Shown here piece after piece: positions 35,858-62,794 of a DNA stretch of 64,000 nt. The first letter of the stretch is position 1. Each line of letters opens with the position of its first letter. Source of the DNA: Rebecca billardiae RCC1528 (taxonomy: Eukaryota; Protista; Haptophyta); contig OZ251232.1 in NCBI GenBank assembly GCA_965240325.2, forward strand, positions 62,001-126,000. The letters run 5' to 3'. Made by a program: the position numbers and the translations under genes. The notes beneath the pieces were generated by a model. That model was not told where the DNA came from. It saw only the letters and a program-made list of their open reading frames with translations, and did no database searches.

Positions 35858-36533
35858 TGCCGGCGGGCGAGGGAGGCCGCGCGGGGGCGCGCGGTCGGTC
35901 GCGCGGCGGCGCGGTGCGGCGCCAAGCTGGCTGCCCGCTGCTGCGCGCGCGCGCGCACGCAGGCCCATTCTATTCTCACCGCACCCGCGATCAGCCTTGG
36001 AGCTCGGCATGGTGATGGTGGCCATCGTGCGGATGGCACGGCGTGCAGCTGCGGCCCACCCGGGCATCGACCGTCGTCGGCGACGTCGCCGCTATGGCGC
36101 ATGACGACAGAGCAGCGGCCGCGCGTCCGGCCGCTTACGCGACGAGCGCTTCGCGCGCAGGCGGCGAGCCATCGACTGATTCACTCACGGATGGTCGTAG
36201 TACGCGTGTTAATTATTCTCGCTGCTGCTGGGCGCTGGCGCCTGCGCGTATATATATGTACGACTATTCTACTACAGGTACTACGTGCGATCAGTACTAC
36301 TACAGTAGTCAAGTAAGCTTGATTGATAGCATAAGCATATATATCTGAGCGGCGCGCGTCATGTCATCGCTTATAATAATTGCCGCTTGAGCCTTATTGA
36401 CCCGTCGTTGACCGAGACCGCCGATCCTCGAGTCAGGCACTGACTCAGTCTCACTCTCAGTCGTCATCAGGATTATACATCGTCAGGCCGATCGAGTTGC
36501 GGCGGCCAAGGCGGCCGGCGCATTGGCGATTGG

Positions 36534-37409
36534 CCGGCCCGCGGAGGCGACCCGTTGCACGGGTGAGTAACCGTGAGCGTATGAAAAAACGACATGCGTA
36601 TGAAATGTCGGTTTTGTCACTCGCGCTGCCGCATGGCTGACGCCCGCGCCGATCCGAGCGGAATGGGGCATTGCGAAGCCGATTCGCAATGCCCCAATCC
36701 AATCGGCATGTCAATCGACCCAACCGTCGCTGAGAACGAACGACAAAACCCAAGGCAGGTGCCCACCAAGGCCCGCGCGCCGGCAGCGTGAACGCGCGGT
36801 CGCGCAGAGGTGGCCAATGCAGAAGGCATCAGCCAATGCTGCTGCCTTCGGCAAGCGCGCCACCTCAGCGTCAGCATCGGGTGGGACCGTGACGATATAT
36901 GCCCTGGGTGCGGCTCCAGCCAAACGCCCTCGACACGGGGAGCCGCCATCGGCAGCGAGCGCGCCACGGATACATACACGTGCTGTCCTCGTGAACGAGG
37001 ATTCAGGAGACGAGGCGCCGGCGGCTCGGCCCGCGATGCGCAGGCAGGCTGGAGTGGCTCACGCTGCAATCGCGTGTACGGGTACAGAAGGCGTGCGCAC
37101 GCAACAACACCGCCTACGTGAAGCGAGTGGGCAAGCTGCTGAAGCTCTCACGATGCGTGCGCGCCTTCCTTCTCACCTCTGCGCTCGCCGACCGCTGCCT
37201 TCCGCGCGGCAGACAGGGGACACCTGCCACCTGGCGCGCACGACGCAGCGTGTAACGCAGAAGGTGGTAGATCCGCTGCCACGCTCCCGCTGCCGCTGCT
37301 GCCGGCGGCAGCGGCATGCCCGAGGCGGCGACGGTGACTATCACTGCCAAAGTGTCGTTTTTTCGGCGCTCACGCGTGCAACTGGTCAGGCGCATTATTC
37401 GCGGACCGG
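36534..37409. mobile_element. 876-bp non-autonomous TIR DNA transposon (MITE-like), 3-bp TSD TGG
   Basis: Left end CCGGCCCGCGGA vs right-end reverse complement CCGGTCCGCGAA (10/12). Next block GACCCGTTGCACGGGTGAG vs GACCAGTTGCACGCGTGAG (17/19), then GAAAAAACGACA (12/12). TGG at 36531-36533 and 37410-37412. Confidence 0.7.
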
Positions 37410-37853
37410 TGGGGGCGAAGAGTAAGGCATGATGGAATTTCGTCAGGCCTGGCTAGCCGAAAGCGGGCAACATTGCCGACACGCGCCTGGCGGCTGCGCC
37501 GCAGCGCGGCTCATTCGCGAGGGCCCGCGGGGCGCCGAGCCACTGGCCTGGGGGCCAACCGCACCGTTGAGTTGAGGGTATCCCGGGCGCCGTTGTGTCG
37601 TCGAGCCGAGCATTACCGAGCATGACATGCATCACCGACGACAGTCGTCACGGCGGACAAGCGCACCTGATCCGGGACCCGCGTACTTCTCACGCCGCCT
37701 GCGGACGCAGCCCGCGGCTCGGAAGGCCTCCATCGTCGCGGATTTCTGGGACGCCGGCACGCCGCCGAAACCTTGCCGAAACGGCCGGTGCCCTTTGAAA
37801 AGGCGCCGCGCGGCCGTCAATGCGTCAACTTCCGTGACGCCCACCCAAGTCAT

Positions 37854-39935
37854 ATGGCGCTCGGCTCCACCGACGTGCTGCTCGAGGCGCGCCGCCGGCT
37901 GGCGCTGCCCGCGCGCGCGCCGCTCGCGCCCGCGCCGCCGCAGCGCGAGGTTCTCGAGCCGTCCCACCGCGCCGCCCACCCGCCAAAGCCCGCCGCGCAC
38001 GCCTCCGCCGCCGCGGAGGACGCCGAGGCCGCCGCGGTGCGCTCGCAGCTGGCCGACGCGCTCGAGCGCGAGCACGCGCTGCGCGCGCAGCTGCGCGAGG
38101 CGCACGCCGAGCTCGACCTGCGCGCGGACGAGGCGGATGCGCTCGCGCGCGAGGCGCACGCCGCGCGCGAGGCCGAGCTGCGCGAGAACTCCGCCGCCGT
38201 GCGCGCGCGCCAGTGCGCGCTGGACTCGCGCGGGGCCGAGCTGCTGAGCCTCGTCGACCGCCTCGTCGCCAAGGACGGCGCGCTCGACGCGGAGCGCGCC
38301 GAGAGCACGCGCGCGTGCGAGCAGCTCGACGCGCTGGCGCGCGCGCTCGCCGACGTCGCGCGCGAGCTCATCGGAGTGCCGCCCGAGCGCGCGCGCGGCG
38401 CCGACGACGACGGCGGCGCCGGCGGCGCGCGGCGGGGCGGCGCCGCCGCCGCCATGCCGCCGGGCGCGCGGCTGGCGCGCTGCGTGATGCGCGCGGAGGT
38501 GGGCGCGCGCGCGCTGATGGACGCGAGCCGCCTCGCCGTCGAGCGGCTGCGCGCCGACGCGAGCGCCACCGCCGCCGCGCTCGAGGAGGCGCGCGGCGCC
38601 GCGCGCGCAGACTCGGCGCGCGCGGCCGCGCTCGCGACGCAGCTGGCGGACAGCGAGGCGGAGGCGCGCGCGGCGCTGCGGCGCGCGCAGGCCGCGGCGG
38701 ACGAGGCGGTCGCCTCCGCCGCGGTCGAGGTGCAGCGCAGCCGCACGCGCGAGCAGCAGGCCACCGCCGCCGCCTCCGAGCTCCGCGCGCGCGCCGCCCG
38801 CGCGTCCGAGCTTCTCGAAGACGCGGCCGCGGCGCGCGCGCGCGCCGCGGCCGCAGAGGACGCGTGCGCGGGCGCGCACGAGCAGCTGCAAACGCTGCGC
38901 GCGGAGTGCGCGAGGCTCGAGCGCGAGCTGGGGCGCGCGCGCGGCGCGGGGGGCGCCGAAGCGCACGACCGGCGCGCGCTCGCGGGCCGGCGCGAGCTGG
39001 CCGACGCCACTGCCGCCGAGGGCGCGCGCCGCAGCGCCCGGGACAGCGGCCGCGCCGAGCCGCGCGGCCGCGGCCGCGCCGTGCGGGCGGAGGGAGCCGC
39101 ACCCACCGCAGCCGAGCCGCGGCCGCCAGGCGCGGCGGCGTCCGCCAGCTGGGCGGCGCTGCTTGCGCCGCACGCGGCCGCGGCAGCAGACGCGCACGCA
39201 GCCGCCGCCACGGCGGAGGCCGCGCCGGGCGCCCGGCCCGGCGCCGAGTCCCCCGCCGCACGAGCCGAGGGCTGGGCGGCGGCCGAGCCCCCCGCCGAGC
39301 AGAGCCTGCCCGCGCCGCCGCCCTCCCCACTCGTGCCCTCGCTCCGCGCGCCGCCGCGCGCCGCCGACGCGCACGCCGGGGGCGGCAGCGCCGTGGGCGC
39401 CCTCGCCCCCCTCCCTCTGCCTGCGCACGGCAGCGCCCAGGCCTCAGCCCAGGCCTCAGCCCAGGCCTCAGCCCAGGCCTCAGCCCAGGCCTCAGCCCAG
39501 GCCTCAGCCCAGGCCTCAGCCCAGGCCTCAGCCCAGGCCTCAGCCCAGGCCTCAGCCCAGGCCTCAGCCCAGGCCTCAGCCCAGGCCTCAGCCCAGGCCT
39601 CAGCCCAGGGGTCAGCGCTGGCCACAGGGCTGGACAGCCTCTGGCAGCTCGTGGCCGCGCTGCCCGCACCGCCGGCCGTCGGGCCGGCACCGGCGCAGCC
39701 CCGCGTCGGGGCGAGCGGCGAGGGCGACGAGATGGCGCCTCTGCACGACGGCGCGAGCTCGCCGCCAGCCGTGCGCGCCGGCACGGCCCTCAGCCCGGAG
39801 CCATCCGCCGGTCGGCGGCCGCCGCACGCTCGCGAGCCGAGCCTGAGCCCGGCCGCGGCGAGCTCGAGGCGCCGCAGCAATCGGTCGCGCCGCCACCGAC
39901 CCGTCGTCGACTCGGACGTCGAAGGGGCGCCCTGA
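37854..39935 (+). CDS. Hypothetical coiled-coil protein with SAQA tandem repeat (693 aa)
   Basis: Long ORF with heptad-like E/A/R/L composition and the same GC3-rich codon style as neighbouring genes. First ATG at 37854. No family recognised. Confidence 0.7.
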   Translation: MALGSTDVLLEARRRLALPARAPLAPAPPQREVLEPSHRAAHPPKPAAHASAAAEDAEAAAVRSQLADALEREHALRAQLREAHAELDLRADEADALAREAHAAREAELRENSAAVRARQCALDSRGAELLSLVDRLVAKDGALDAERAESTRACEQLDALARALADVARELIGVPPERARGADDDGGAGGARRGGAAAAMPPGARLARCVMRAEVGARALMDASRLAVERLRADASATAAALEEARGAARADSARAAALATQLADSEAEARAALRRAQAAADEAVASAAVEVQRSRTREQQATAAASELRARAARASELLEDAAAARARAAAAEDACAGAHEQLQTLRAECARLERELGRARGAGGAEAHDRRALAGRRELADATAAEGARRSARDSGRAEPRGRGRAVRAEGAAPTAAEPRPPGAAASASWAALLAPHAAAAADAHAAAATAEAAPGARPGAESPAARAEGWAAAEPPAEQSLPAPPPSPLVPSLRAPPRAADAHAGGGSAVGALAPLPLPAHGSAQASAQASAQASAQASAQASAQASAQASAQASAQASAQASAQASAQASAQASAQASAQGSALATGLDSLWQLVAALPAPPAVGPAPAQPRVGASGEGDEMAPLHDGASSPPAVRAGTALSPEPSAGRRPPHAREPSLSPAAASSRRRSNRSRRHRPVVDSDVEGAP
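39435..39609 (+). repeat. 12-bp tandem repeat (GCCCAGGCCTCA) x14 plus a partial copy, encoding (AQAS)n
   Basis: Perfect copies read directly. Confidence 0.97.
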
Positions 39936-40111: not shown

Positions 40112-40951
40112 ATGGTGCACATCGACGTGGGCTCGGGCGTGCCCGGCGAGCCCGTGGACACCGGCGGCTCGCGCTTCACCTTCCACGCGCTCCCCGCCAC
40201 CGAGTTCCACGTGCAGCAGGGCGGCGCGGCCCTCGAGCGCCTCAAGAAGTGGGACCTGTCCGGCACGATGGTGCTGCGCGCGTTCCGCTTCGACCAGCAG
40301 CTGCAGCGCGCGCAGATCGACGCGTTCATGCTCGACCTGTTCAACGACCCGAACGTCGCGGCGGCGCTCCCCGTGTGCACCGGCCGCGGCGCGTGGGGCC
40401 CGCTCGGCCGGCCGGTGAGCGCGGTGCGCAAGTCTGAGGTGCCGACCACCGCCGTGCGCACCGACCTCTTCGACCGGCTGTACGAGCACGGCATCGCGGC
40501 GCGGCCGCGCGCGGGGGAGGAGGGGGGCGGGTACATCGCCAAGTGCCTCGACCAGCCCCTCGCCGACGGGCTCGTCGCCTCCGACCGGCTGCGGCTGCTG
40601 CTGTGCGACGAGGGCTCTGACGAGTGGGGCCTGTACGCGGAGGGCGAGCGCGCCGAGCTGCTCTTCCGCTGCCTGCGCCACGTGTGCGTCGGCGGCGGGC
40701 TGTGCCAGTACGAGGACCGACTGGGCCCGCTGCTCGACGCGACGAAGGCGCTGTACCGCGACCTCGTGCGCGTGCGCAAGAACGGCTCCACCGGGCAGCT
40801 CGAGGTGGGCTCGTGGACGTACGCGCTGCACGGCGCGGACGGCACGCAGCTCTGGGCGCGCGAGTCGCCGCACAACTTCTGGTACGTGAGCGTCGACCCG
40901 CTCAAGCGCCACGTCGTCGTCTGCGCCAACACGTACATACCCATGTTCTGA
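40112..40951 (+). CDS. CFAP300: Cilia- and flagella-associated protein 300 (C11orf70/DUF4498), dynein-arm assembly factor (279 aa)
   Basis: LKKW, LFDRL, SDRLRLLL..E.SDEW.LY...ERAELLFRCLRHVCVGGGLCQYED..PLLDATKALYRDLVRVRK and HNFWYVSVDPLKRHV match the family pattern. Confidence 0.9.
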   Translation: MVHIDVGSGVPGEPVDTGGSRFTFHALPATEFHVQQGGAALERLKKWDLSGTMVLRAFRFDQQLQRAQIDAFMLDLFNDPNVAAALPVCTGRGAWGPLGRPVSAVRKSEVPTTAVRTDLFDRLYEHGIAARPRAGEEGGGYIAKCLDQPLADGLVASDRLRLLLCDEGSDEWGLYAEGERAELLFRCLRHVCVGGGLCQYEDRLGPLLDATKALYRDLVRVRKNGSTGQLEVGSWTYALHGADGTQLWARESPHNFWYVSVDPLKRHVVVCANTYIPMF

Positions 40952-41289
40952 CGACGCTGTGCCGCGGGGGTGCGCTGGGACGGTTGTGCCGTGGGCCGCC
41001 GGCGCAGGTCAGCCGGCCTGCCAGCCCTGTGAGCGCGCCGGCACGGCCTGCGCCGTCACTGCGCGGTCCGACTGCACGGCGGGTGGCCGATCGGTCCGTG
41101 CCGGCCCGCGCTCAATAAATAGTAGTCGCGCGACGATGATCATCATATCGTCGTCATCATCACGACTGATATGCGATGCTGATGATGACTATCGGGCGGT
41201 CGTTGTCGTCGGGCACGGTCCGCGGGACCGTCGGCGGGACCCGCGGGTTAGGGTACGGTGGCGGCATTATTAATTAATTATATATATAT

Positions 41290-43928
41290 CACAGTGCCGC
41301 CGGAAAACTGCTCAGGGTGACGTTTTAAGTTGTCCGCACCACTAGTCGAATCATCGGACAATTCTGAAGCGGTGCGCCTAAATTCGGCGCACCATAGGCG
41401 CGTCGAATCGTGGCACAGACCTTGGTAGCAGGCCACACCTGAGCGCGCTGCGCGCGCCGACGCGCGCTCGGCGCGGGCAAAAAATCATGCGCCGTTGGCA
41501 TTACGCAGCCCCGCGCAGCGCTGTGCTCGAGCTCGGCGGCGGCGAAAGCGGGCGGGCGCACACGGCGGTGCCCGTGCGCGCTGCTCCGAGCGCAGCTGCG
41601 GCCACCCCGGCGGCATACCGCCGGTCGAGGGCACGAAAACCGATTTTTCGGGAAAATGCAGAGCAGCGGCGCCCGAGCGCGCCCGAGCTCGTCGCAGCAC
41701 AGTCTCCTGGTGGCTGCGCCCCGTGAAGCCACGCCACGCGGGGCGCTGGCGTGCGCGTGGCCTGCGCCCACCGTGCGCTGCCCGATCATGGCCGTCGACC
41801 GCTCCGAGCGCCTCACCACGCGTGCTCGAGCCCACCGATACTGACGCCCGAGCACGGTGCCGGCAGCGCTCGCAGGTGGGCGTCGGAGAAAACACGCCGG
41901 CCGAACGAGCTTGAAGCGTCCGCCGCGATGCCAACGGCAGCGGACGACGTGCGCGCCACCTCGGCGCCAGTCGCCCAGCCCTTGCGCGGCGGTGCGGGCT
42001 CGCTCGTTCGCCGCCATCAGCTGCGCGCGCGCAGCCCGATCACTGCCCGCTGGTTCTGTTGTCGAGCAGCTGCGGCCTGCCACGCGCACTGCCGGACATT
42101 GAGCCACAGCGCGAGCACGCGCCTCGTCTGGCACGCGCGAGCACTCAGCATCGTGCGTGGCCACCATGACGCGCCCATCTGCGCCAGCAGCGATGAGCAC
42201 GCCGCCGTTCAGCTCGCATCGGGCTCGCTCGCGACGCAGCAACGCGCGGCCGTAGCGGCAGCAGCGGCGCCGTCGAGCACGCGCAGCAAACAAATATGCA
42301 GCGCGGGCGAGTCGACGGTCTGGAAAATGCGCGATCACGCCTCAGCAGGCTGGCAGAGCCCGCCCGAGCTGCAGCATGCCGTAGGTGCTGCCCCAAGCTC
42401 TCGACTGCCCGTAAGCGGCGGCATGTGCGGCGGCGCCGGCGGCGGCCATGCTGCCACGCCGTTGCGCGCCGCGGGGCGCCGTCGGCACCTCTGTGGTGAA
42501 GCGCACAGAGCTCGAGCCCACGGGGGCTGGCGACCGTCAAACCGACACCCCATGACGCGGGGCTGCGTGCGCCAGCTGCGCGCACTCCGTGGGCCCACCT
42601 AGCCCGCTCGAGCAGCTCGCCTTGGGTGCGCGCAGCGGCTCGAGCACACTGGTATGGGACGCCTGCCTGCGGTGCCGCCGAGCACATGCGGCCGACGGTC
42701 ACTCAGCACGGGCGACTCGACGGCGGCGAGCAGGCGCGACGGCCTCGCCGCGCCGCGGAAAAGCCTGCCCGGGCTGCAGCACGCCGTAGGAGCAGCCCAG
42801 CGCCCTCCTCCGCCCTCCAGCTTCGGCGCGCGCAGCAGGCCCGGCGGCGGCCATGCTGGCGTGCCCAAGCATGAAGATGGGCGCGGCCGGCCGCGCCGTC
42901 GCAAAGCGCGCAGAACTCGAGCTCGGGGGGGCGGACGGCCGCCAAACTGGCGCGGCAGGACGTGGCACTGCGTGCGCCAGCTACGCGCACCCGCTGCGCC
43001 CGCGTGGCCCGTGCGAGCGCCGCGCCTCGAGCACACGCAGCTGCTCGACACAGCCACGGCAGTGTGGCTTGTGCGCGTGCACGTGATCAGTCTCAGCTCT
43101 GAGGCGCGCGCTCAGGAGGGCTGCGGCCGGGCCGAGCGCGATCTGCGCGGACGGTACAGCCTGGCGGCTCATGCCAGCCAGCCCAAAGCCCGCTCCGCCA
43201 TCCGCGTCATGGCGCTCCAGCCTCTCGCGTGCTGCGCTGCAGCCGCGCTCGGCAAAGACGTCGCCCAGCCCGCCTTGCACGCGGCTGAGCAGTGGCAGCC
43301 AGGCGAAGCGTCGTCGCGGGCGAGGCTGCGCTGGGTGATGCGGCTCGGGTCGGTGGGCAAGTCGCACCCCGCCGTCGGTCGCCTCCACGCCTCAGGCTCG
43401 CTCGAGGTCAAAGACAACTGCGCGGCGCGGCGTTTGCGCGGGCGGGCCGCGGGCGTGGCGGGGTGTACGCGTGCAATGTCACAGCCTCCCACACAATTTC
43501 AGGAGGGTGAGACGCACCGCCAGCGGCACCCGCACACAATCCCACCCTGCGCGAGCCACCTGCCGTGTCGACTGAAGCATCAGGCTCGGGCGCAACCGCG
43601 GGCGGTGCATGCAAGAAGCTCGCGAAACGCACCGCGCGCGCCGTGAGGGCGAAAGGAGAGCACCCGTCAGGGCGGCGAGGAACTTGATGCCCAGCGCCAC
43701 GCGGAAGACGACCCCAGCCCGCGTCGACGCATAGTCGGGCCCGCGAGCAGCCTCGTCGGTCTTCGCCGAGTAGATCGCGCCGCGAGCCGAGGCACCGCTC
43801 GTTTGAGGCTCCGTCCGCCGCGAAGTCGCGGCTTCCACCCGAGTTCCACTGTCCGGCCGAGACCGGATTCGCTGACTCGAGCTGCGGACCGTCCGAAGCG
43901 TCACGGAAAATTCCAATCCTGCACTGTG
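41290..43928. mobile_element. 2,639-bp non-autonomous DNA transposon with CACAGTGC termini (CMC/Chapaev- or Transib-like), TSD ATAT
   Basis: CACAGTGC at 41290-41297 and GCACTGTG at 43921-43928. Both ends share inner blocks GGAA, GTGACG-N9-GTCCGCA and AGTC..GAATC. ATAT lies on both flanks (41286-41289, 43929-43932). No intact transposase recognised. Confidence 0.8.
42360..43040. repeat. Diverged internal tandem duplication with a 405-bp period
   Basis: Three blocks align at exactly +405: 42369/42774, 42436/42841 (18 nt identical), 42563/42968. Confidence 0.85.
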
Positions 43929-44082
43929 ATATATTATTCGTTCATATATAGCTAGTTATTGGCGCGGGTCGAGTGTCCGTCCTAAGCAGCCGCATGTATC
44001 ACTGTCGTCTGTCGAACAGCCAACGGTCGGTCAGCCAAGGGTCCTGGTCCGCCCGGTCCGTTGGTCGTGCCCGGCTCTGCAG

Positions 44083-47000
44083 CTACGGGCACGAATAGCA
44101 ATACGGCGCAGCGCGCAGCCGCTGGGGCGAGACGTCGGCCAGCCGCTGCTGCGGCCCGTCGTCGGGCACGACCAGCTGCACGCCGCCGTCCTCCGCCAGC
44201 CGGAGCACCTCGGCCGAGCCGCCCACGTCGTAGTAGCGCGAGAGCCAGAAGAGCGTGGCGGCGGTGCACACCTCCTGCTGCTCTGCCAGCTCGGAGAGCC
44301 GCGCGCCCGATGCCGCGCGGCGCGCGCGCTCGGCCGGCGGCGGCGCGGGTGCGGCCGCGCGGTCGCGCGGCGGCGGGGAGGGCGGCGGCGACGACGGCTG
44401 GGCGCGCGCAGCGTCGGCGGTCGCGCGGCCGCTCGCGCCTGCCGCGTCGCCACCCGCACTCCCCGCGACACCCTCACGCGCCGCGGCCGGGCTGGCGGGC
44501 GGCGGCGTGCCGTGCGCGCGTGCGCTCGGCTCTTGCCGCGCCGCCGCCGCGCGCTCGGCGCGCATGCTCGCCAGCTCGGCGCGCAGGTGGCCGAGCTCGG
44601 CGGCGAGCTCCGAGTGCAGCGCGGCGGCGCCGGCGGTGTCCGCGCGCGCGGCGGGCGCGGGCGAGGCCGCGGCCGGGACGGCGGCCGCGGCGGCGTGGCC
44701 GCCGTGCGCGGGCGCGGGCCCGGGCGGCGGCGTGTGCGCGGCAGCGTGCGGCGGCGGCTGCCATGGCGGCGGCTGCACGAGCGGCGAGGCCGCGCCGCCC
44801 GGCACCGCGGGCGGCTGCGCGAGCCGCGCGTGGTGGTATGGCGGCAGTGCCAAGCCGAGCGCGGCGCCGGGCGCCCCGCCCGCGCCGCTCGGCCCGTGCT
44901 GCCACGCGTCGCCGCCCGGTGCGCGCTGCCAGTGCCAGTGCTCCGCGCCGGGCTGGGGGTCGGGCCGGGGGCTGGTCTGCGCGCCGAGGCTGCGCGTGTC
45001 CGTCGCCTGCACGCCCACGCAGGCCACGCTCGGCCCGCCGGCGCTGTGCGCGCACGCAGGCCAGGGAGGGGCGGCGGCGGCTGGTGCGATAGCAGGCGGC
45101 GGCACGGCCGCGCGGAGCGGCGCGCCGGCCGCAGCGGCCGGGTGGGCGGCTGGCGGCTGCGGCGCCGTCGGCGCCGCGGCCGGCACCGAGCTCGGCGCGC
45201 GCGGCGGCGAGTCGGCGGGCGCGCGCGCCTGCGCGCCCACCGCGCGCGTCGCGGCCGTCGCCTGCGCGCCCACGCTGCGCGTCTCCGCCGCCGCCACCGC
45301 CGCCGGCGCCGCCTGCTCCTCGGCCGCCTGCACGCCGACGGAGCACGGCCGCGGCGCGCGCGGCGGCGTCGTCTGTGTCGACGCGGCGGCGGGCAGCGGC
45401 GCTGTCTGCACCGCCACGCTGGGTGGCGGCGGCGGCGGCGCGTCGACCTGCACCGCGGCGGCGACGCGCGGCGGCGGCGGCGGCGGCACCGCCTGCACGC
45501 CCTGCTCGCGCGCCGCGCCGCGCCGCGCCCAGCCCTCGCCGCCGGCGTCGGTGCCCGCGTCGCGCGTGCGCGCGCACGCCTGCTCGCCCGCGTCGCGCGT
45601 GCGCGCGCACGCCGTCTGCGTGTGCGCCGCGCGCCGCGCCGCCGCGCCGCCCGTCTGTGTGTGCGCGTGCGCTGCGCGCGAGGGCGGCGGCGCCGCCGCG
45701 GCCACCCCGCCGCCGGCGTCGGTGGCGGCGTCGACCACCGCCGCCGCGTCCGTCTGCGAGCGCGCGTGCGCGCAGCGCGGTGCGGCCTGCGTGCCGCGCG
45801 CAGCCACGGCCGCCGCGCGCGCCGCCGGCCGCTCGGCGGCGGGCTGGGCGGCGGGCTGGGCGGCGGGCTCGGCGGCGGGCTCGGCGGCTGCCGAGCCGGC
45901 GCTGCCGTCGGCGGCGGCGGCGGCGCGCGGCGTGTCGCGCTCGGGCCGCGCGCTTGCCGCCTCCGCCCCCGCCTCCGCCTCCGCCGCGTGCGCCAGCGCC
46001 GCGCACGCCGCCTCCAGCTCGAGCGCCACGCGCAGCGCGCCGCCCGCCTCGGCGCGCGCGGCGTCGGCGATGCCGCCCACCGCCGCCAGCGCGGCCGCCG
46101 CGTCGTCGCGCGCGCGCGCGGCGCCCTCGAGCGCGTCGGCGGCGCGCGCGGCGTCGCGCGCGCGGCGGGAGCCGTGCTCGTGCGCGGACGCGTCGGCGCG
46201 CGCGCGCGCGGCGCTCAGCTCGGCGCCGAGCGCGGCCGCGCGCCGCTCGGCCGCGCGCGCGCGAGCGTCTGCGTCCGCGCGCGCCGCCGCCTCCGCCGCC
46301 GCCTCGCGCCGCGCCGCGCGCAGCGCCGCGTCGCGCGCGCCGTCGGCGTCCGCGGCCGCGGCGCGCTGCGCCTCCGCCGCGGCGAGCGCGGCGCGCGCGC
46401 CGCCGAGCGCGCTCTCGAGCGCGGCCGCGGCGTCCGCGGCGGCGCGCGCCGCCTCCGCCGCCTCCGCGCGCGCCGCCGCCGCATCGGCCGCGCCCGCGTC
46501 CGCGCGCGCGCGCGCCGCGCCCGCCTCCGCCTCCGCCGCGGCGCGCGCCGCCTCCGCGTCCGCGGCGCGCGCGCGCTCCGCGCCGAGCTGCGCGCTCATC
46601 GCGCCGAGCAGCGCAGCGTGCTGCTCCGCCGTCGCGCGCGCGCCCTCCGCCTCAGCCGCGCGCGCGGCCGCGTCGGCGCGCGCCGCCTCGAGCGCAGTGG
46701 CGTGCACGCCCAGCTCGGCTCGCGCGCCGTCGAGCGCGCGCCGCGCTGCGGCCGCTTCCTCGCGCGCGGCGCCGAGCTCGGCGGCGCGCGCGCCCGCGGC
46801 CGCCGCCATCGCGCCGAGCGACGCGCGCAGCGCCAGCCCCTCCGCCGCGGCGCGCTCCGCCTCGGCGCGCGCCGCGCGCGCGGCGGCCGAGTCCGAGTCG
46901 GCGGCACCGCCGCCGCCGGCCGCGCGTGCCGCGTGCGCGCGGTGCGCGTGCGGCGCGGTGCGCGGCGCGCGCGCGGCACGCGCCGCCGCCGCCGACGACG

Positions 47001-49260
47001 ACTGCGGCGGCGGCGGCGTGCAGACGGCCGCATCGGCGCGGAGCGGTCGCACGCCGCCGCCCGCGCTCTCCGGCGCTGCTGCCACGGAGCGGCCGCGGCC
47101 GCGCGCGCGGACGGCGCCGCGCGCGCGCGCGCCCGCGCCTGCGTCGACGCCGCCTTCGGTGCCGCGGGCTTGGCCGCCGTCGTCGAGCTCGCCCTCGTCG
47201 GCGCTGCCGCCGGTCTCGGCGCCGACACGCCGCCCCGCGCGCTCGGCCTCTGCTCGGTCGTCCTCGCCGCCGCCGCCGCCGCTGTCGCGCGCGCGCGTCC
47301 GCACGCGTGCCGCTGCGGAGCGTGTGCGCTCTGTGCGCGTGCGTGTGTGTGGCGCCGCTGCTGCTGCTGGGAGTGGGCGTGTGCTGGGGCTGCTGCTGCG
47401 GCTGGCCTCCGACAGGCCGCCGCCGCTGCTGCTGCTGCCGCCGCTGCCGCTGCTGCTGCCGCTGCTGCTGCTGCTGCTGTCGCCGCCCTCTTCGCCGGAG
47501 GCGTCCGGGCCCTCCGCGCACGCGCACGCCCTGCGCCGCGCCGCCGCGCGAGCCGCCTCGTCCGCGGGCGCGCGCTCCGCACCGGGCGCGCGCTCCGCAC
47601 CGGGCGCGCGCGCAGAGGCTGGGCTGTCCGCGCCGCGGCGCGCGCGCCCGCTGCGCCGTCCGCCGTCCGGAGCCGCGCCGGGGCGCGCGCGCCGCGGCGT
47701 GGCGGGGCCGGGCGACCGCGCGCGCGGGGGCGAGGCCTGCGCTCCCGCCTCCGCTCGCCTCCTGCCGCTGCCACCGCCGGGCGGCGTGTGCGCGCTCGGC
47801 TGCGGCGGCTGCGGCTGCGGCGGCTGCGGCTGCGGCTGCGGCTGCGGCTGCGGCTGCGGCTGCGGCGGCTGCGGCTGCGGCTGCGGCTGCGGCTGCGGCT
47901 GCGGCTGCGGCTGCGGCTGCGGCTGCGGCTGCGGCTGCGGCTGCGGCGTGGCCGGCGCGGCGGCCGCCTCGTGCGCCACGTGCGCGGAGAGCGCAAGCAC
48001 GTGCACCACCGCGAGCGACTCGCCCGCGCTGCTCACGCCGGCGCCGCCCGCGCGCGCGCGCGCGGGCGTGTGGTCACTCGGCGCGGCGCCCGCCACCGCC
48101 GCGCCGTCGCTGCCGCCGATCGCGAGGGCGACGGCGAGTGGCGGCGCGCCGTCGGCGCCCGGCTCGTCCGCGCCGGGCGGGAGCAGCACCGCGCCCGCGC
48201 GCACGCCCACCAGCGCGTGTTTCAGCCGCGCGCCCGGCGCCTGCCCCGCCGCCGCCAGCGCGTGCCACGTCAGGCTCTCGAGGTCGAGGCAGCTCAGGTC
48301 AGCCAATGGGAGCGCGCCGCCCGCCGACCCGCCGTGCACGAGGGCGTAGCGGCCGGCGGAGACGACGAGCGCGGCGGCGTTGTACCGCGGCGCGACGCGG
48401 CCGCGCGTGTCGCAGCGCGAGAGCGTCGCCTCGCTCAGCGGCGAGCCGCCGCCGCCGCCGTCGCGACCGGCCGACGGCGGCACCGCACCGCCGCCGCCGC
48501 CGCCGCCGCCGCGCTCGCCCTCGCGAGGCGGCCGCGCGTGCACGTGCAGCGCGAGAAGCTCGGCGACGGCGCGGCCGTCGACGGAGCCGCCGAAGACGTA
48601 CATCGTCCACGGCTCCTGCTCGCGCGCGAACGCCACCGCGCCCAGCCGCCCGCGCACGTCCGACGCGCCGCCGCCGCCGCCGCCGCCGCCGGCCGCGCTG
48701 GGCGGCGGCGCGACGCGCGGATACCGCCACGCGCCGCGCGGCGAGGCGGCGCAGGGCAGCTCGAGCGCGACGAGCTCGCGCGAGTAGTGCCCACCCGCCG
48801 AGCCCTCGGGCGCGACGAAGCCGCCAAAGTACAGGATCGCCTGCGCGCCCAGCGCCGAGTCTGCGCGCGCGGGCAGCGCGCACGCGCAGTGGCCGACGCG
48901 CGCGGCGGGCGCGCGCCCCTCGGCGCGCACGGGGCGCCAGGCGAGGCGCGGCACGTCGAGGCAGTGGGCGTCGCGGAAGATCGTGCCGCCGTCGCCCCCG
49001 CCGAACACGTACAGCTCGTCGCCCACCAGCGTCGCCGCGTGCCACGCGCGCGGCGCCGGGAGCGGCCCGGCGCACGGCGCGTGCGCCCACCGCATCGAGC
49101 GCACGTCGAGCACGGCGAGCTGCGCGCCGCTCGCCGGCGCGCCGCCGAGCACGAGGAGGCGGTCGTCGTACGCCGAGACGCTGTGCCCCATCCGCGGCCC
49201 CGGCGCCGCGCCCACCGTCTCGGCCGCCGCCCACTCCGCGCGGAGCGGCGGGCGCGCCAT
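44083..49260 (-). CDS. Kelch beta-propeller + coiled-coil protein with an array of TQT-like motifs (~1,725 aa)
   Basis: N-terminal kelch repeats (PRMGHS..LLVLGG, PRAWHA..LYVFGG, RVGHC..ILYFGG, MYVFGG, LVHGG, RLKHA). Then a PQ repeat, an Ala/Glu/Arg coiled coil and the motif array. First ATG at 49260 (the track start is GTG). Confidence 0.85.
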   Translation of the reverse strand: MARPPLRAEWAAAETVGAAPGPRMGHSVSAYDDRLLVLGGAPASGAQLAVLDVRSMRWAHAPCAGPLPAPRAWHAATLVGDELYVFGGGDGGTIFRDAHCLDVPRLAWRPVRAEGRAPAARVGHCACALPARADSALGAQAILYFGGFVAPEGSAGGHYSRELVALELPCAASPRGAWRYPRVAPPPSAAGGGGGGGGASDVRGRLGAVAFAREQEPWTMYVFGGSVDGRAVAELLALHVHARPPREGERGGGGGGGGAVPPSAGRDGGGGGSPLSEATLSRCDTRGRVAPRYNAAALVVSAGRYALVHGGSAGGALPLADLSCLDLESLTWHALAAAGQAPGARLKHALVGVRAGAVLLPPGADEPGADGAPPLAVALAIGGSDGAAVAGAAPSDHTPARARAGGAGVSSAGESLAVVHVLALSAHVAHEAAAAPATPQPQPQPQPQPQPQPQPQPQPQPQPQPPQPQPQPQPQPQPQPPQPQPPQPSAHTPPGGGSGRRRAEAGAQASPPRARSPGPATPRRARPGAAPDGGRRSGRARRGADSPASARAPGAERAPGAERAPADEAARAAARRRACACAEGPDASGEEGGDSSSSSSGSSSGSGGSSSSGGGLSEASRSSSPSTRPLPAAAAAPHTRTRTERTRSAAARVRTRARDSGGGGGEDDRAEAERAGRRVGAETGGSADEGELDDGGQARGTEGGVDAGAGARARGAVRARGRGRSVAAAPESAGGGVRPLRADAAVCTPPPPQSSSAAAARAARAPRTAPHAHRAHAARAAGGGGAADSDSAAARAARAEAERAAAEGLALRASLGAMAAAAGARAAELGAAREEAAAARRALDGARAELGVHATALEAARADAAARAAEAEGARATAEQHAALLGAMSAQLGAERARAADAEAARAAAEAEAGAARARADAGAADAAAARAEAAEAARAAADAAAALESALGGARAALAAAEAQRAAAADADGARDAALRAARREAAAEAAARADADARARAAERRAAALGAELSAARARADASAHEHGSRRARDAARAADALEGAARARDDAAAALAAVGGIADAARAEAGGALRVALELEAACAALAHAAEAEAGAEAASARPERDTPRAAAAADGSAGSAAAEPAAEPAAQPAAQPAAERPAARAAAVAARGTQAAPRCAHARSQTDAAAVVDAATDAGGGVAAAAPPPSRAAHAHTQTGGAAARRAAHTQTACARTRDAGEQACARTRDAGTDAGGEGWARRGAAREQGVQAVPPPPPPRVAAAVQVDAPPPPPPSVAVQTAPLPAAASTQTTPPRAPRPCSVGVQAAEEQAAPAAVAAAETRSVGAQATAATRAVGAQARAPADSPPRAPSSVPAAAPTAPQPPAAHPAAAAGAPLRAAVPPPAIAPAAAAPPWPACAHSAGGPSVACVGVQATDTRSLGAQTSPRPDPQPGAEHWHWQRAPGGDAWQHGPSGAGGAPGAALGLALPPYHHARLAQPPAVPGGAASPLVQPPPWQPPPHAAAHTPPPGPAPAHGGHAAAAAVPAAASPAPAARADTAGAAALHSELAAELGHLRAELASMRAERAAAARQEPSARAHGTPPPASPAAAREGVAGSAGGDAAGASGRATADAARAQPSSPPPSPPPRDRAAAPAPPPAERARRAASGARLSELAEQQEVCTAATLFWLSRYYDVGGSAEVLRLAEDGGVQLVVPDDGPQQRLADVSPQRLRAAPYCYSCP
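47798..47947. repeat. (GGCTGC)n coding hexamer repeat, poly-(PQ) on the minus strand
   Basis: Direct reading. Confidence 0.95.
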
Positions 49261-49433
49261 CCCGCGGCAACCCCCGTGCTGCAGCCAGCAAGGCTGGGCC
49301 GCTCGCCACCGGTCATTCCAGCCACCGGCCACCCGCCCCGCCAGTCCGGGGGAGGCGCCGACCGAGGCGAGGAGGCCGCGGCCGGCTCGACTCGACGTCC
49401 CGCATCGGTCTCGGCCGTGGCCTGCCCATCAGC

Positions 49434-49576
49434 ATGCTGCTCACGCGCGCGCTCCGCATCGGCGCGGCGGCGAGCGTGTCGATCGCCGCGGCGGCGGCCG
49501 TCTCGCACGGCGCGCCATCGTTCTGCGCCACCGACACGCCCGGCAGCGGCCTCGCCCTCTCGCGGCTGCGCGCGGC

Positions 49577-49607
<31 letters not shown>

Positions 49608-50488
49608 GCGGCCGCACGTGCGCCGCGCTTCGGCGGCAAGACGTTCATCGTGACGGGCGGCACGTCGGGCGTGGGCGAGGCGGTGGCGACGCGGCTCGCG
49701 TCGGAGGGCGCCGCGGGGATCACCATCGTCGGGCGCAGCGCCGAGCGCGGCGCCGCCGTCGTGAGCAAGCTGCAGGCGCTCGGCTGCCGCGCGCAGTTTG
49801 TGCGCGCGGCCATGGACGTGGTCGCGGACGTGCGCGCGGTCGTGCCGGCGCACGAGAAGGCGTTCGGCTCGGTCGACGGGCTCGCGAACTGCGCGGGGGA
49901 CACCTCGCGCGGCGGCCTTCTCGACCAGTCCGTCGAGTCGTGGGACACCCTCTTCGCCGTGAACGCGCGCGCCCCCTTCCTGCTGATGCAGGCGTCGTGC
50001 GAGCTGATGAAGCGCACAGGCAAGCAGGGCGCCATCGTGAATGTCATCACGATCACGAGCCACGGCGGGCAGCCGTACCTGTGCGGGTACGCGGCGTCGA
50101 AGGGCGCGCTCGTCACGCTCACCAAGAACGCCGCGCACGCGCTGCGCCGCGAGCGCATCCGCGTGAACGGCATCAACATCGGCTGGACGGCGAGCGCGGC
50201 CGAGCACCGCACGCAGGTGGCGAGCGGTGCGGGCGAGGACTGGCTGGAGAAGGCCAAGGAGAAGGAAAGCGCACGCGGGCGCGCGCGCGGGCGCGGGCGG
50301 GCGCGCGGGCCTCACGCCGCGTCCCGCTCGCCCTTCCCCGGTGCCCCACGCCGCAGGTGCCGTTCGGCAAGCTGGTGCAGCCCGAGGACATCGCCGCGCT
50401 GAGCGCCTTCCTCCTCTCCGCAGAGTCGGGCGTGATGACCGGCTCGGTGATCGACATGGACCAGATGGTGATCGGCGGCTACGACTGA
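49434..50488 (+). CDS. Classical short-chain dehydrogenase/reductase, bacterial-type, with N-terminal targeting-like extension (exons 49434-50264, 50357-50488; ~320 aa)
   Basis: TGGTSGVG, NCAG, YAASK, IRVNGINIGW. The C-terminus PFGKLVQPEDIA...TGSVIDMDQ is in another frame, so an intron is required. Confidence 0.9.
50265..50356 (+). other. Probable non-canonical GA-AG intron (92 nt)
   Basis: Donor AAG|GAAAGC, branch-like CCTCAC at 50310, acceptor CCGCAG|GTG. The only in-phase GT alternatives delete the DWLEKA helix or leave no usable intron. Confidence 0.6.
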
Positions 50489-55917: not shown

Positions 55918-57630
55918 CTAGGCACCGCCTGATGCGGCGGACGAGGCCCAGTCATCAGCCCAGGCAGGGCTGGGTCCAGTCTTGGCCATCGGGCGGCCGC
56001 ACGAGAAGCCGCCGCCAAACTCGAGCGCTCCCATCTCGAGCGTGGAGCTCTGCACGGTCTTCCATTTGTAGCCGCCGCCGCTCGTCGGCAGCCATTTCCG
56101 GAGCATGCTGGGGCTCCCGCGCGGCAGCGCCTTCAGGAGTGCACCCGCGATTGGCGGGCGCACCAGCGCCGACACTCGCATCCGCGCGCCGTGCGCCTCC
56201 GAGCACCCCGGGTTGTCGCTGAAGCCGTGCTCGGTCGGCACAAGGAGCGGGGGGCCGAAGTTGGCGCGCGCCGCCTCCACGCGCAGCCGGAGCTGCCGCG
56301 TGCCGTCCAGCGAGACGGCGCGGACGGCCAGCCTGCCTCTGCACGCGTCGCGGTACACGCTCAGCCGGTCGCCGTCCGTCGTGCGGAAGTCCCAGCGCAG
56401 CGCGGCCGAGCGCGCGCCGTGAGCGCCGGTGCTGCCCGCGGGCGCGCCGTAGGCGAGCACTGATTGGCTCGTGAGCACGCCGCCCACGTTGAGCAGCACA
56501 CCCGCCGCGAGGAGGAAGGTGCCGTTCGGGGCGGCCTGCGGAGGCTCGCGCTGCCGGCGCCGCGCGTCGGGCACGAGGCGTCGAGCGGCGGCCGCGCGGC
56601 GCCGAGCCGCCCGCTGGTGGCCCGGCGCGGCAGGCCAGTCCACGCCGAGCGCGTGCACCCAGTGCCAGCCCAGCGGAAACCCGGAGCCGTGGTTGCCTTC
56701 CATGTGCACGCGCGCGCGGAAGGAGGAGGCGAGCGTGGGCGCGCGCAGCGCGGCGAGCGCGGCTTCGGCCGCGCTGGGGGGCTCGGCGCTGGCCCGCCTC
56801 GCGCTCGAGCCGTTCGGCTCGGCGGCGAGGCTCGTCCCTCCAAGGGTGCTCCCTCCCTCAGCGCCAGCGGCCAGAGGCAGGCGCGCGTTGCTGCCGCCAC
56901 CGGCCGCTGGAGCGCGCACGCGCACCGTGGCGGGCGAAGCGAGGGAGTACACAAAGTAGCGACACGGCAGCACCGTGCCAAACTTGCTGGCCCACCCCTC
57001 GACCCCTGCACCCTCTCTCCGCGCGTCCCACGCCACGCGCGCGTCTGCGCCCAACTCGATCGCGAGCCCCGGGAGCGCAAAGCTGCAGCTCACGTGCGAG
57101 CCGTGCACGCGCAGCTCGCCGGCGGCGGGGTGGCCGGGGGCGACGCGCCAGACGAAGTTGAGCATGCGCCCGCTGCCAAGCGGCGCGATGTAAGGCCTGG
57201 ACGGCTGCGTGCTCCACGCGTCCACCGCGCCAGCTGGCAAGAGCGCGTGCTCGATGATGTGCGTGTCACCCTGGTGGTACTGCAGCAGCACGAGGTGCTC
57301 GGTGAAGTTGCTCTGAGCGCGAGGCGAGGACGAGCCGATGACGATCATCGCTACCCCCATGTCCGCGGCCACTGCGCGGAAGGCCCAGCCCTCAAAGTAC
57401 GCCGTGCCCCATGGCGCGTGCTGCAGCACAGGATGCGACGGAGGCAGCGCTTGCGTCGCAGCACGCGTGGCGCTGCCGATGGGATCGCTGTCGTCAGCCG
57501 AGGCGCCAATACGGCGGCCACTACGCCCACTCGCAATGACGCCAGGCCCATGCAAGAGCAGCGGCCATGACGCCGCCAGCTCAAGACAGGCCGCAGCCGC
57601 TACGAGCAGTACCAGGCTCGCGTACGGCAT
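55918..57630 (-). CDS. Tocopherol cyclase (VTE1)-like protein with signal-peptide-led presequence (570 aa)
   Basis: YFEGWAFR, EGW...LPCRYFVYSLAS and HMEGNHGSGFPLGWHWVHA (compare EKNWG.SFP..W.W). Hydrophobic N-terminus MPYASLVLLVAAAACLELAASW. Confidence 0.75.
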   Translation of the reverse strand: MPYASLVLLVAAAACLELAASWPLLLHGPGVIASGRSGRRIGASADDSDPIGSATRAATQALPPSHPVLQHAPWGTAYFEGWAFRAVAADMGVAMIVIGSSSPRAQSNFTEHLVLLQYHQGDTHIIEHALLPAGAVDAWSTQPSRPYIAPLGSGRMLNFVWRVAPGHPAAGELRVHGSHVSCSFALPGLAIELGADARVAWDARREGAGVEGWASKFGTVLPCRYFVYSLASPATVRVRAPAAGGGSNARLPLAAGAEGGSTLGGTSLAAEPNGSSARRASAEPPSAAEAALAALRAPTLASSFRARVHMEGNHGSGFPLGWHWVHALGVDWPAAPGHQRAARRRAAAARRLVPDARRRQREPPQAAPNGTFLLAAGVLLNVGGVLTSQSVLAYGAPAGSTGAHGARSAALRWDFRTTDGDRLSVYRDACRGRLAVRAVSLDGTRQLRLRVEAARANFGPPLLVPTEHGFSDNPGCSEAHGARMRVSALVRPPIAGALLKALPRGSPSMLRKWLPTSGGGYKWKTVQSSTLEMGALEFGGGFSCGRPMAKTGPSPAWADDWASSAASGGA

Positions 57631-58210
57631 TGCCAGTCGATTGCCAGTCCACTCTCGGAATCTCGGATCCACGACGTCAGGCGGTGCCGGCGGGGAGGTC
57701 CGTGGAGACGCCAGGGCCGGCGGGAGCGGCACGGTGGCAGCGCATCTACCGTCTACGTAGTACGTACAGTACTTACCGTAGTGTACAGTAAGTACAGTAC
57801 TGTACAGTACATTGATCTGTACCTACAATCACCTTCCGTGTGGCGTGTCGGCGTGTCGCGCGCTGCGCCACGCGTGCCGGGGGCCCCCGGCCCGCCGCAG
57901 CAGCAGTCGGCGAGTGAAGAGGCGATGACCGCAACGCAGACGCAGTGCAGTACGGCCTGCATCAGCTTGCCGCCGCCGGCGCGGTAGTTGCCCTTGCAGC
58001 GCTCGCGCTCGGCGAGCCGACTAGCGTGCTGCTGCTCAGGCATGGCGCATGCCAAGTGCGCGTCTCGTCGGCGTGCTATCGCCTGCCAACTCGTGCACCC
58101 GTGCCGGCAGCTTCATTATCTCCATGAGGGCTGCTGCTGCTGTCGCCATCCTCCCCATCACCTGAGTCGCGCAGCGCGCCGGCCTTGTAGCGGCTGTGCG
58201 CCGCGCAGTG

Positions 58211-59335
58211 TCAAGCGACCAAGCTGTATGTACCATTCAGCAGAGACTTGAGCACAGCTGCCCCGATCAAGTTGACGCCGCTCAGCAGCTGCATGCGTGA
58301 CACGTCCTTGCCAAACCTGCGAAGGGCATACGCATACAGCTGGAGGTCCACTGCAGTGAGCCTCCGGATCTTGGCCAGCACTGGCTCTGACAGCTCTGCT
58401 GGCGAGTGGGCAGGCACGCCATGTGTGATATGCGACTGCCCAGCGTCTGCCTTGCCCACAGCGGCGAGGCACCTGGCAGAGACCACTCCGCGGGCCATCC
58501 ACTCCAGCAGGCACAGGGACTCTGAGTAGAACTCGGAGATCAGCACGACTGGCGTGCTGTCAATGCGATCCCTGAGGACATCGATTCGTGGACTCAGATG
58601 CCCTGCGCAGCCAGCATGCAACTTCCCACCATTGCAACCGCACTCGGACCCATTCGCAGCCAGGGCTTCAATGTAGCGCGCCTGGAGGTTCCACGGCACA
58701 TAGCACCTGAACTGGTCGATGACGCAGCCGTCCGGTGAGCTCTGGGCTGGCATGTGCCCCAGACGCCCTCCCTGACCACGCGCCTTCTCCCAGCGCAAGT
58801 AGACGTCAAGCCAGCGCCCCAAGCCAGAGTAGGGCACGTCATCACGCCCCCTGGGGAATCCTGTGAGCTGTGTTTGCCTGCGGCCCCACTGGCTGTATTT
58901 GCACTCCATGAACTGTGAGTAGACATGCGCTGTGGGGTGACGCACGAAAAGGACCATCCGTGCGCAACGCGAGCCACCCGCTGCCTCCTGATGCAGTTTT
59001 CTTTGCACCCACAGCCACGACTTCTCCCCGCCCCTCACCCATGCATCAGGCGGCACGTGGCGTGGCGCGTCGAGCGCGAACGACGAGCCCGCTGTCTTGG
59101 GAAGGTGCACATTGAAGTAGTAGGCCCTCGCCCAGTCACACGAGCCTTTGGGCTCACTCGGTGAGTGCCAGCTGCCAACGGCTGCGCCTGACATGTTTGT
59201 CCCAGGGCGCCAGATGCCGTCCTCGTGACTGAGGCGGCGCGCACGAAGGGAAAGGGGAGCTGTGATTGCGCCCTCAAACGGCATCAAGCGCGAGGTGCGC
59301 ATGACGTGCAAGGTGCACAACGCCACAGACATCAT
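58211..59335 (-). CDS. Sulfotransferase family 2 (carbohydrate sulfotransferase-like), 374 aa
   Basis: 5'-PSB motif HLPKTAGSSF, 3'-PB-like FVRHPTAHVYSQF, NLQARY, ISEFYSESLCLL, DLQLYAYA. Confidence 0.8.
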   Translation of the reverse strand: MMSVALCTLHVMRTSRLMPFEGAITAPLSLRARRLSHEDGIWRPGTNMSGAAVGSWHSPSEPKGSCDWARAYYFNVHLPKTAGSSFALDAPRHVPPDAWVRGGEKSWLWVQRKLHQEAAGGSRCARMVLFVRHPTAHVYSQFMECKYSQWGRRQTQLTGFPRGRDDVPYSGLGRWLDVYLRWEKARGQGGRLGHMPAQSSPDGCVIDQFRCYVPWNLQARYIEALAANGSECGCNGGKLHAGCAGHLSPRIDVLRDRIDSTPVVLISEFYSESLCLLEWMARGVVSARCLAAVGKADAGQSHITHGVPAHSPAELSEPVLAKIRRLTAVDLQLYAYALRRFGKDVSRMQLLSGVNLIGAAVLKSLLNGTYSLVA

Positions 59336-60101
59336 TATCGCCTGGACTGCTTCTGCGGCGTCCGCTCTGCCACCATGTATACACTACGCGCACTGCGCGC
59401 AGGGCTCCTCCATCGCCGGTCGTGGCGTCCGCCGGCCGCTGGCGCTGACGAAAGTGGCAGGATGCGATCAGCAAGCAGTATCGTACGTGCAGTACAGTTT
59501 ACTGTACGGTACAGTTTACTATCATCAGAATAGGAGACGCACACAGCTCAGGCAGGCGAGATTGACGCCCGCCAACTGTCACCGCCCATGAAGCCGTCGC
59601 CACAGCACCCCCTTGTGAAGGATGATCGATCACGACAGTATCATGTATCATCATGTCTCTGTCACTCGGATGGCCATGCAGTTGCACCTTGCCACCGGGC
59701 ATCACGGTTGACTGACGATCAATATTATAGTACGTGAATAATAACATATATATCACTATATACCTCAGACTCGCGTCGACACGGACTCGACAGTCTCTTC
59801 ACATCAGCAGTAGCAGACGTATTATAGTACTTACTACTAAGAATTAGCCGCCGCCGGCGCTGTACTGACCGGTGACCCGGCGCCGCGGCGCTTCCATCCG
59901 ATGCCACTGCGCCGCCTCTCTCCCAGTCTCTGCCTCGGGCGTTCCCCTGCCGTCACCGCTGTCTCCACGCAGCTTGCGACCGGCATGTGCGCGAGCGCCG
60001 CTCCGCCTGGCGGCCGGGGCTATCCGCGCGAGGTGCGTGCGGGCAAGGTCAGACCGCCACGGGCGCCACCGCTCTGAGCCAGCAGATTGCTCTGAGCCGG
60101 A

Positions 60102-61106
60102 TCAGCGCCGACGGCGTCTCCGCCGCCATTGCTTCTGGACGTACGCGCGGACCTGCTCCAGGCAGGCCCGCTCTGTGAGCGACAGCACGAGCCCGGCCGT
60201 GACGGGCGCCACCGCCTCCACGCCCATCTCCGCCGCGCTGCCGGACCATCGGCGCGCACCAGACCCTGGCAGGCCGCCAGCGGCGCCGATCACGCGCTCG
60301 GCGATGGTGCGCAACAGCCCGTGCTCGTGCGCCTGGCGGTAGCGCTCCTGCCCGAAGATGCCGGTCAGGTGCACCACGAGCGACTGCTCCAGGGCGCGCG
60401 AGTAGCTCATGCCCGAGCGCTCCATCACGGCCGCGTCGGGGAACGGCGAGATTGCAATCTCGGGCGCGGGGAGCGCGAGGTCTGGGTGGGCGCGCGCGAG
60501 CTGGAGGGGCACGTCGCACGAGGTGCGGTCCCACTCGCTCGGCTTGAAGCCGCGCGCGTACGCCCGCCGCCACAGCGCGAAGATCGGCGCGCCCTCCCTG
60601 CCGAGCAGCACGCCGTTGTTGAGCTTCTCCACGCCAGAGGCGTTCTCGTACCCGCCGATCAGGCCCGCGCCGCACTGCCGCACGTCGTCGAGCGGGCGGA
60701 GCACGAAGGCGTCGTGGTCGATGTACATCCCGCCGTGCTCCTCGAGGAGCTCGAGCCGCATGTGGTCCGACTGGTGCTCCACGCGGCGCACGCGCGCCCC
60801 GTCGAAGAAGGTGCGGTTGCGCGGCGCGCGCCGTACGAGCTTGTCCGCCATCGCGAGCGCGCAGAGCCACGTGGGCGAGGCCGGCGGGAAGCGGTCGTAG
60901 TAGAGCAGGTACGCATCGGGTCGCAGGATGTACCGCACGCTCATCATCGCGAGCACGTGCTCCCAGCGCATCGTGCCGCCTCCGAGCCAGGGCTGGTGGA
61001 CCACGTTGGGGATGGGCGCAGCCGACGTGTCCGCGAACCGCGCGGGGCACGCGAACGCGGCGGCGGCGGCGCGGAGGCAAGCCACGGCCAGCAGGAGGGC
61101 GGGCAT
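60102..61106 (-). CDS. DXD-motif glycosyltransferase (GT32/alpha-1,4-GT-like) with signal peptide (334 aa)
   Basis: IPNVVHQPW, HQSDHMRLELLEEHGGMYIDHD, LNNGVLL. N-terminal MPALLLAVACLRAAAA. Confidence 0.85.
   Translation of the reverse strand: MPALLLAVACLRAAAAAFACPARFADTSAAPIPNVVHQPWLGGGTMRWEHVLAMMSVRYILRPDAYLLYYDRFPPASPTWLCALAMADKLVRRAPRNRTFFDGARVRRVEHQSDHMRLELLEEHGGMYIDHDAFVLRPLDDVRQCGAGLIGGYENASGVEKLNNGVLLGREGAPIFALWRRAYARGFKPSEWDRTSCDVPLQLARAHPDLALPAPEIAISPFPDAAVMERSGMSYSRALEQSLVVHLTGIFGQERYRQAHEHGLLRTIAERVIGAAGGLPGSGARRWSGSAAEMGVEAVAPVTAGLVLSLTERACLEQVRAYVQKQWRRRRRRR

Positions 61107-62668: not shown

Positions 62669-62794
<126 letters not shown>

Follow-up and report, generated by a model that had tools for sequence, protein, structure and literature searches.

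The window analyzed here is a stretch of 64,000 nucleotides (nt) from the haptophyte Rebecca billardiae RCC1528 (GenBank assembly GCA_965240325.2, contig OZ251232.1, positions 62,001 to 126,000 of the forward strand; coordinates below are those of the window). In it, the intronless CFAP300 gene (40112-40951, plus strand) and the gene of a kelch-repeat protein (44083-49332, minus strand) converge tail to tail. The spacer between them extends from 40952 to 44082 and contains a block, 41290-43928, that carries inverted repeats at its two ends and is bordered on both sides by AT-only runs. Ordinary flanks of 338 nt and 154 nt separate the block from the stop codon of CFAP300 on its left and from that of the kelch gene on its right, respectively. 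In the original prediction, which was made from the letters of the DNA, the gap between the two genes was described as bounded by the heptamers CACAGTG and CACTGTG. The heptamers are at the positions given, whereas the gap is longer than the block by these two flanks. This block is a real structure, and a solitary DNA transposon of the non-autonomous kind is its most likely identity.

The two ends of the block are built from the same series of short motifs. The octamer CACAGTGC occupies 41290-41297 on the plus strand, and its reverse complement, GCACTGTG, occupies 43921-43928; both directly abut the AT-only runs. Read inward, the left terminal inverted repeat (TIR) zone (41290-41359, plus strand) consists of CACAGTGC (offsets 1-8 from the terminus), GGAA (13-16), GTGACG (28-33), GTCCGCA (43-49), AGTCGAATC (55-63), and CGGACA (65-70), which are separated by 4, 11, 9, 5, and 1 nt, respectively. 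The right zone (43850-43928), read on the minus strand, has the same blocks in the identical order: CACAGTGC (1-8), GGAA (15-18), GTGACG (25-30), GTCCGCA (40-46), AGTCAGCGAATC (52-63), which is composed of AGTC, AGC, and GAATC, and CGGACA (74-79), with 6, 6, 9, 5, and 10 nt between them. CGGACA is a further block common to both ends and is located beyond AGTC..GAATC. All the other blocks had been located correctly in the original prediction, as had the difference of 3 nt in the distance from the terminus to GTGACG (27 nt at the left end and 24 nt at the right end). This offset is regained within AGTC..GAATC, and CGAATC lies at offset 58-63 from either terminus. The spacers between the blocks show no mutual similarity.

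The bipartite motif GTGACG-N9-GTCCGCA is found at 41317-41338 (plus strand) and, inverted, at 43883-43904 (minus strand), and is a candidate transposase-binding site. Even with one mismatch tolerated, these two copies are its only matches in the window, where 0.2 are expected by chance. The heptamer CACAGTG/CACTGTG occurs three times on the two strands of the window: two of the occurrences are the ends of the block, and the third (1873-1879) has no adjoining AT run. In a search for repeated short subterminal motifs, no k-mer common to both ends was enriched. Neither long terminal repeats (LTRs) nor other direct terminal repeats were found on the block. It should be mentioned that perfect GC-rich hairpins are present 82-112 nt from the termini, at 41371-41393 (GGTGCGCC-7-GGCGCACC) and 43817-43832 (GCCGCGA-2-TCGCGGC). 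Stems of 7 bp or longer are frequent in the window as a whole (13.5 per kb), and the hairpins were given no weight as a feature of the ends.

The similarity of the ends was compared with chance expectation, using boundaries chosen independently of the end match. The inner edges of A/T runs of at least 8 nt were paired at distances of 60 nt to 10 kb, which gave 51 pairs. All eight bases from the edge are complementary in one of the 51 pairs, 41290/43928, and the runner-up pair has five; the chance expectation of an 8/8 match is estimated by us at ~1e-3 (0.26 per position, 51 pairs). The colinear exact blocks other than the terminal octamer amount to 25 nt. None of 20,000 dinucleotide shuffles reached a chain of this size; among 30,000 composition-matched pairs drawn from low-GC segments elsewhere in the window, 3 did (~1e-4). 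The similarity is concentrated in blocks: ~78 columns with 53% identity contain at least five perfect stretches of 6 nt or longer, which uniform decay of an originally perfect repeat would rarely produce (p ~2e-4).

Two results speak for a coincidence picked by eye from 64 kb. When the two 100-nt ends are simply aligned locally, their score of 18 does not stand out from that of random pairs (15 ± 3), and the same block-chain score is reached by 1.2% of random position pairs taken from the whole GC-rich window. The latter excess is caused by low-complexity GC-rich coding repeats. In view of both results, the test needed boundaries that are independent of the match, as the edges of the AT runs are. 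The end similarity is truly modular, with blocks lying between unrelated spacers as had been predicted, and the inverted ends are hardly a product of chance: coincidence is a very improbable explanation, given the single 8/8 edge match and the rarity of the subterminal chain.

The composition switches sharply from the AT-only flanks to the interior of 72% GC, exactly at the inverted ends. The left run (41266-41289) ends in (AT)5 (last letters ATATATATAT), and the right run (43929-43938) starts with (AT)3 (first letters ATATATTATT). This agrees with the predicted TA-run context with ATAT on both sides. The two runs hold the left and right copies of a possible target-site duplication (TSD) of AT, ATAT, or ATATAT. 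The flanks ATTATTAATTAATT(AT)5 and (AT)3TATTCGTTCATATATAGC rejoin into one AT island, as at 1444-1562 and 62671-62791, and the rejoined island would be located 338 nt from the stop codon of CFAP300 and 154 nt from that of the kelch gene. This arrangement fits insertion of the block into a TA tract that was already there. Spacers of this genome regularly contain AT-only islands with a (TA)n core, as seen in the window. The islands at 1444-1562 (119 nt) and 62671-62791 (121 nt) are mostly (TA)n and sharp-edged in their GC-rich surroundings, and shorter AT islands mark other spacers (36209-36381, 59721-59753, 63007-63023, and 63796-63832).

The inverted repeat could reach up to 6 nt outward into the AT run: TIR and TSD are inseparable here because (AT)n is self-complementary. 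When all possible boundaries were worked through, duplications of 2, 4, or 6 bp were found to fit and no others; those of 3, 5, 8, and 9 bp are excluded, barring a change of the microsatellite after insertion. The 4-bp ATAT matches on both sides, whereas the 5-nt flanks read TATAT and ATATA and the flanking triplets read TAT and ATA. If the ends are set at 41289 and 43929, i.e., TCACAGTG...CACTGTGA, the flanks become TA/TA.

The interior of the block (41360-43849) is without coding capacity. Its GC content is flat at ~72% and shows no three-base periodicity; in the flanking genes the spread is 0.3-0.5 and the GC content at third codon positions (GC3) is ~0.98. The open reading frames (ORFs) of the interior translate to sequence rich in Arg, Ala, Cys, and Trp, which is not protein-like. 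A Pfam scan of 19 ORFs of the block (74-337 aa) gave no family, and the lone weak match, to CHASE (E = 0.23), is noise. Of the two longest ORFs, that of 337 aa had no match among 1.84 billion protein representatives, and that of 330 aa had none in a word-indexed protein search. Rfam at E <= 1 gave two sub-threshold matches on the block and nothing above threshold. The sole internal structure is a tandem duplication (42264-43052, plus strand), the units of which (42264-42648 and 42669-43052; ~385-405 nt) are ~70% identical. This duplication is old. Non-autonomous elements often contain a tandem duplication of this internal kind.

The block is best explained as a TIR DNA transposon, probably a non-autonomous or long dead cut-and-paste element, in a (TA)n tract. 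The generic feature of such elements, inverted repeats beyond chance, is present in the form of ends of ~70-80 nt with exact blocks in conserved order. The original prediction was of a non-autonomous DNA transposon with ends like a recombination signal sequence (RSS); its first part is retained, whereas the RSS likeness does not extend beyond the heptamer. A DDE-type transposase encoded elsewhere might have recognized the subterminal blocks. The best candidate for its recognition site would be the bipartite GTGACG-N9-GTCCGCA, the half-sites of which start 15 nt apart. Cleavage at the CAC/GTG termini might then have been followed by integration into the TA tract by way of a short staggered cut. 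From the lack of similarity between the spacers, it would seem that only the modules in contact with protein have been retained.

Several further observations weigh against a transposon, first of all that just one copy is known. Comparison of the block with the 64-kb window by blastn recovered its own internal duplication and no second copy, and under lenient scoring the alignments were driven by composition alone. A composite pattern of the ends gave no match in viral contigs and four in metagenome contigs; the latter are judged to be chance matches because they are unpaired and lack both the AT flank and the remaining blocks. A search for an empty site gave none: in Diacronema lutheri and Pavlovales sp. 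CCMP2436, synteny does not extend downstream of CFAP300, and the end motifs are absent from both loci. In D. lutheri, just 200 nt separate CFAP300 from the next, unrelated convergent gene. Two Logan contigs of the same species, L001 and L006, extend no further than window position 40972 and miss the block by 318 nt. The possible TSD is indistinguishable from a TA microsatellite. Finally, ordinary spacers of the window are likewise 60-72% GC and non-coding, and therefore composition alone is no mark of foreign origin.

L001 (run ERR14847151) and L006 (run ERR14847148) end on the identical base, L001:1368 and L006:1947, 21 nt past the stop codon of CFAP300. If the runs are RNA-seq, this shared end may mark the 3' end of a transcript; alternatively, it may be a branch point of the assembly graph arising from a variant just downstream. 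A 12-nt microsatellite, (GGCCTCAGCCCA)n, is located at ~39483-39610 in a coding ORF upstream of CFAP300. The alignment of L006 breaks at this microsatellite (L006:560-608), which suggests that the array length differs between the window and L006. L006 and the window are 99.1% identical on the downstream side of this break and 94.6% identical on the upstream side; public data therefore include a second haplotype or strain. A search with the C-terminus of the kelch protein, intended to reach contigs that span the site of the block, was dominated by low-complexity words and returned no such contig, and an exact look-up of the protein of the neighboring short-chain dehydrogenase gene found nothing on record. 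Two other spacers, 56400-60400 (~4 kb) and 35860-37670 (~1.8 kb), are non-coding stretches of unusual length for so compact a region, with 50-69% GC. They contain ORFs of up to 604 aa without a Pfam match, and no TIR structure like that of 41290/43928 was seen in them.

The main rival to a transposon is an immobile intergenic segment, whose mirrored ends are cis-elements (3'-end, termination, or boundary signals) serving both converging genes. Each gene would then meet the same series: untranslated region, AT island, CACAGTGC, GTGACG-N9-GTCCGCA, and so on. Since the genes are convergent, any signal downstream of both looks like an inverted repeat. The single copy without relatives in the window, the viral contigs, or the metagenome contigs agrees with this explanation, as does the resemblance of the interior in composition to other spacers of the window. 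However, the window holds at least 15 genes, and yet the bipartite motif is found nowhere else in it; the one other CACAGTG, as described above, is not beside an AT run. Moreover, it is hard to see what role a 2.6-kb spacer would play between signals of this kind. Such an immobile segment is considered unlikely.

The host context of the block is a GC-rich and compact one. Most 1-kb bins of the window have 70-90% GC, and its genes are mostly intronless with GC3 ~0.98. Pavlovales are known for very high GC, 73% in D. lutheri (PMC8379373). The CFAP300 protein shares 54-58% identity with proteins of Pavlovales sp. CCMP2436 and D. lutheri, and it is 100% identical over the 279 residues of the query to a protein on the Logan contig from run ERR14847151. 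By these identities, the host is a haptophyte with kinship to the Pavlovales. The short-chain dehydrogenase gene lies at 49434-50402 (plus strand). Its last ~45 codons are rich in Arg, Gly, and Pro and are not protein-like, which suggests that an intron or a change of frame is present close to 50270; with such an interruption, this gene would be among the few interrupted genes of the window. One uninterrupted ORF of 7,680 codons (GC3 0.97) occupies 9781-32820 on the plus strand. Midasin AAA-lid domains and five AAA_5 (dynein-related) stretches in its first 4,000 residues identify it as a homologue of midasin (MDN1/Rea1); this homologue is apparently intronless and unusually long. At E <= 1e-5, Pfam gave no match for residues 4001-7679.

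If the transposon is confirmed, a DNA-transposon family will be added to a lineage in which mobile elements are barely catalogued: in the pavlovophyte genome analysis considered here, that of D. lutheri, LTR elements and long interspersed nuclear elements alone were named as the major classes of annotated repeats (PMC8379373). A further consequence would be that the rare intergenic (TA)n tracts of extremely GC-rich, compact genomes can accept insertions. The block is of an ordinary type, found in a lineage that has received little study. Only if a RAG1/Transib-like transposase with matching ends were found would it be informative on the origin of V(D)J recombination, and the present evidence does not lead in this direction.

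Among known systems, a Helitron was considered and rejected: its TC start after A would fit, but there is no CTRR 3' end and TIRs are present. It is very unlikely that the block is the first member of an undescribed haptophyte superfamily, or of a deep branch related to CMC or Transib, with ends organized like RSSs. In such ends, CACAGTG would be the cleavage heptamer, followed by a variable spacer and the bipartite GTGACG-N9-GTCCGCA as binding site. If this were true, the block would be an independent case, outside animals, of a heptamer-spacer-binding-site architecture. The RSS likeness of the block is confined to the seven terminal nucleotides.

It is highly improbable that the block belongs to Transib or a RAG-like group, as a haptophyte branch of the lineage behind V(D)J recombination. 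Transib elements have 5-bp TSDs, GC-rich targets, and a TIR of the form CACAATG-23-AAAAAAATC (PMC1131882). The terminal heptamer of the block has exactly the letters of the RSS consensus, CACAGTG, and agrees with the Transib consensus CACAATG at six of seven positions, and its CAC corresponds to the conserved cleavage-proximal triplet (PMC1131882). The unequal distances from terminus to motif at the two ends (27 versus 24 nt) also recall the RSS arrangement, but a difference of 3 nt is far from the 12/23 asymmetry. The other properties differ from those of Transib. No boundary gives a 5-bp TSD, since only duplications of even length match. Whereas Transib prefers GC-rich targets (PMC1131882), the block lies, at this one site, in an A/T-only run of 24 + 10 nt, and such tracts are few in a window of mostly 70-90% GC. 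At the position of a nonamer after a 23-bp spacer, the left end reads ACGTTTTAA and the right end CTTCGGACG; after a 12-bp spacer, they read TGCTCAGGG and TTTCCGTGA, respectively. None of these is an A-rich nonamer, as the original prediction had recognized. The block also encodes no transposase. The RSS/Transib flavor that had been attributed to the element is thus not borne out by its duplication, its target, or its nonamer positions. CAC..GTG termini are common to several superfamilies.

Chapaev and the CMC group are characterized by invariable 5'-CAC...GTG-3' termini and a TSD of 3 to 4 bp, and Chapaev3 follows a rule of TWA duplication with insertion between A and T (PMC4079192). The block has CAC...GTG termini (CACAGTGC at 41290 and GCACTGTG ending at 43928). 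As for the TSD, the 4-bp ATAT fits, the 3-bp one (TAT versus ATA) does not, and 2 and 6 bp fit equally. The flanking triplets TAT and ATA differ from the TWA of Chapaev3. In addition, the terminus of the block is CACAG, whereas that of CACTA elements is CACTA, and the block holds no transposase that would show membership. Subterminal motifs beyond a short perfect terminus, such as those of the block, are typical of CACTA-like elements. On the letters of its ends, the block may be regarded as compatible with the CMC group (Chapaev with 4 bp, Mirage with 2 bp). The preference for Chapaev/CMC in the original prediction is compatible with the CAC..GTG termini and the 4-bp ATAT, but it is not exclusive: TSDs of 2 or 6 bp, or of TA with the ends shifted by one base, fit too.

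The latter case corresponds to Tc1/mariner/pogo elements. The block lies in a TA tract, and the ends TCACAGTG...CACTGTGA, one base further outward, give TA/TA flanks. The Tc1 inverted repeat starts with CAGTGC, and this hexamer lies 2 nt inside the terminus of the block. The usual TA|CAGT junction is absent, with TC or CA intervening; there is no transposase in the block, and a TA duplication would be indistinguishable from the microsatellite. A TA-targeting family with these outward ends would fit equally as well as CMC.

In Repbase, non-autonomous elements are assigned to superfamilies by TSD length and terminal positions 1-11 (PMC4455052). One copy in a microsatellite, as the block is, gives neither of the two. 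In overall build, the block resembles large non-autonomous TIR elements with internal tandem repeats. Such families are defined by many copies and the block is a single one, but it shares with them the non-coding interior, the duplicated unit of ~400 nt, the TIRs, and the location in a gene-poor spacer.

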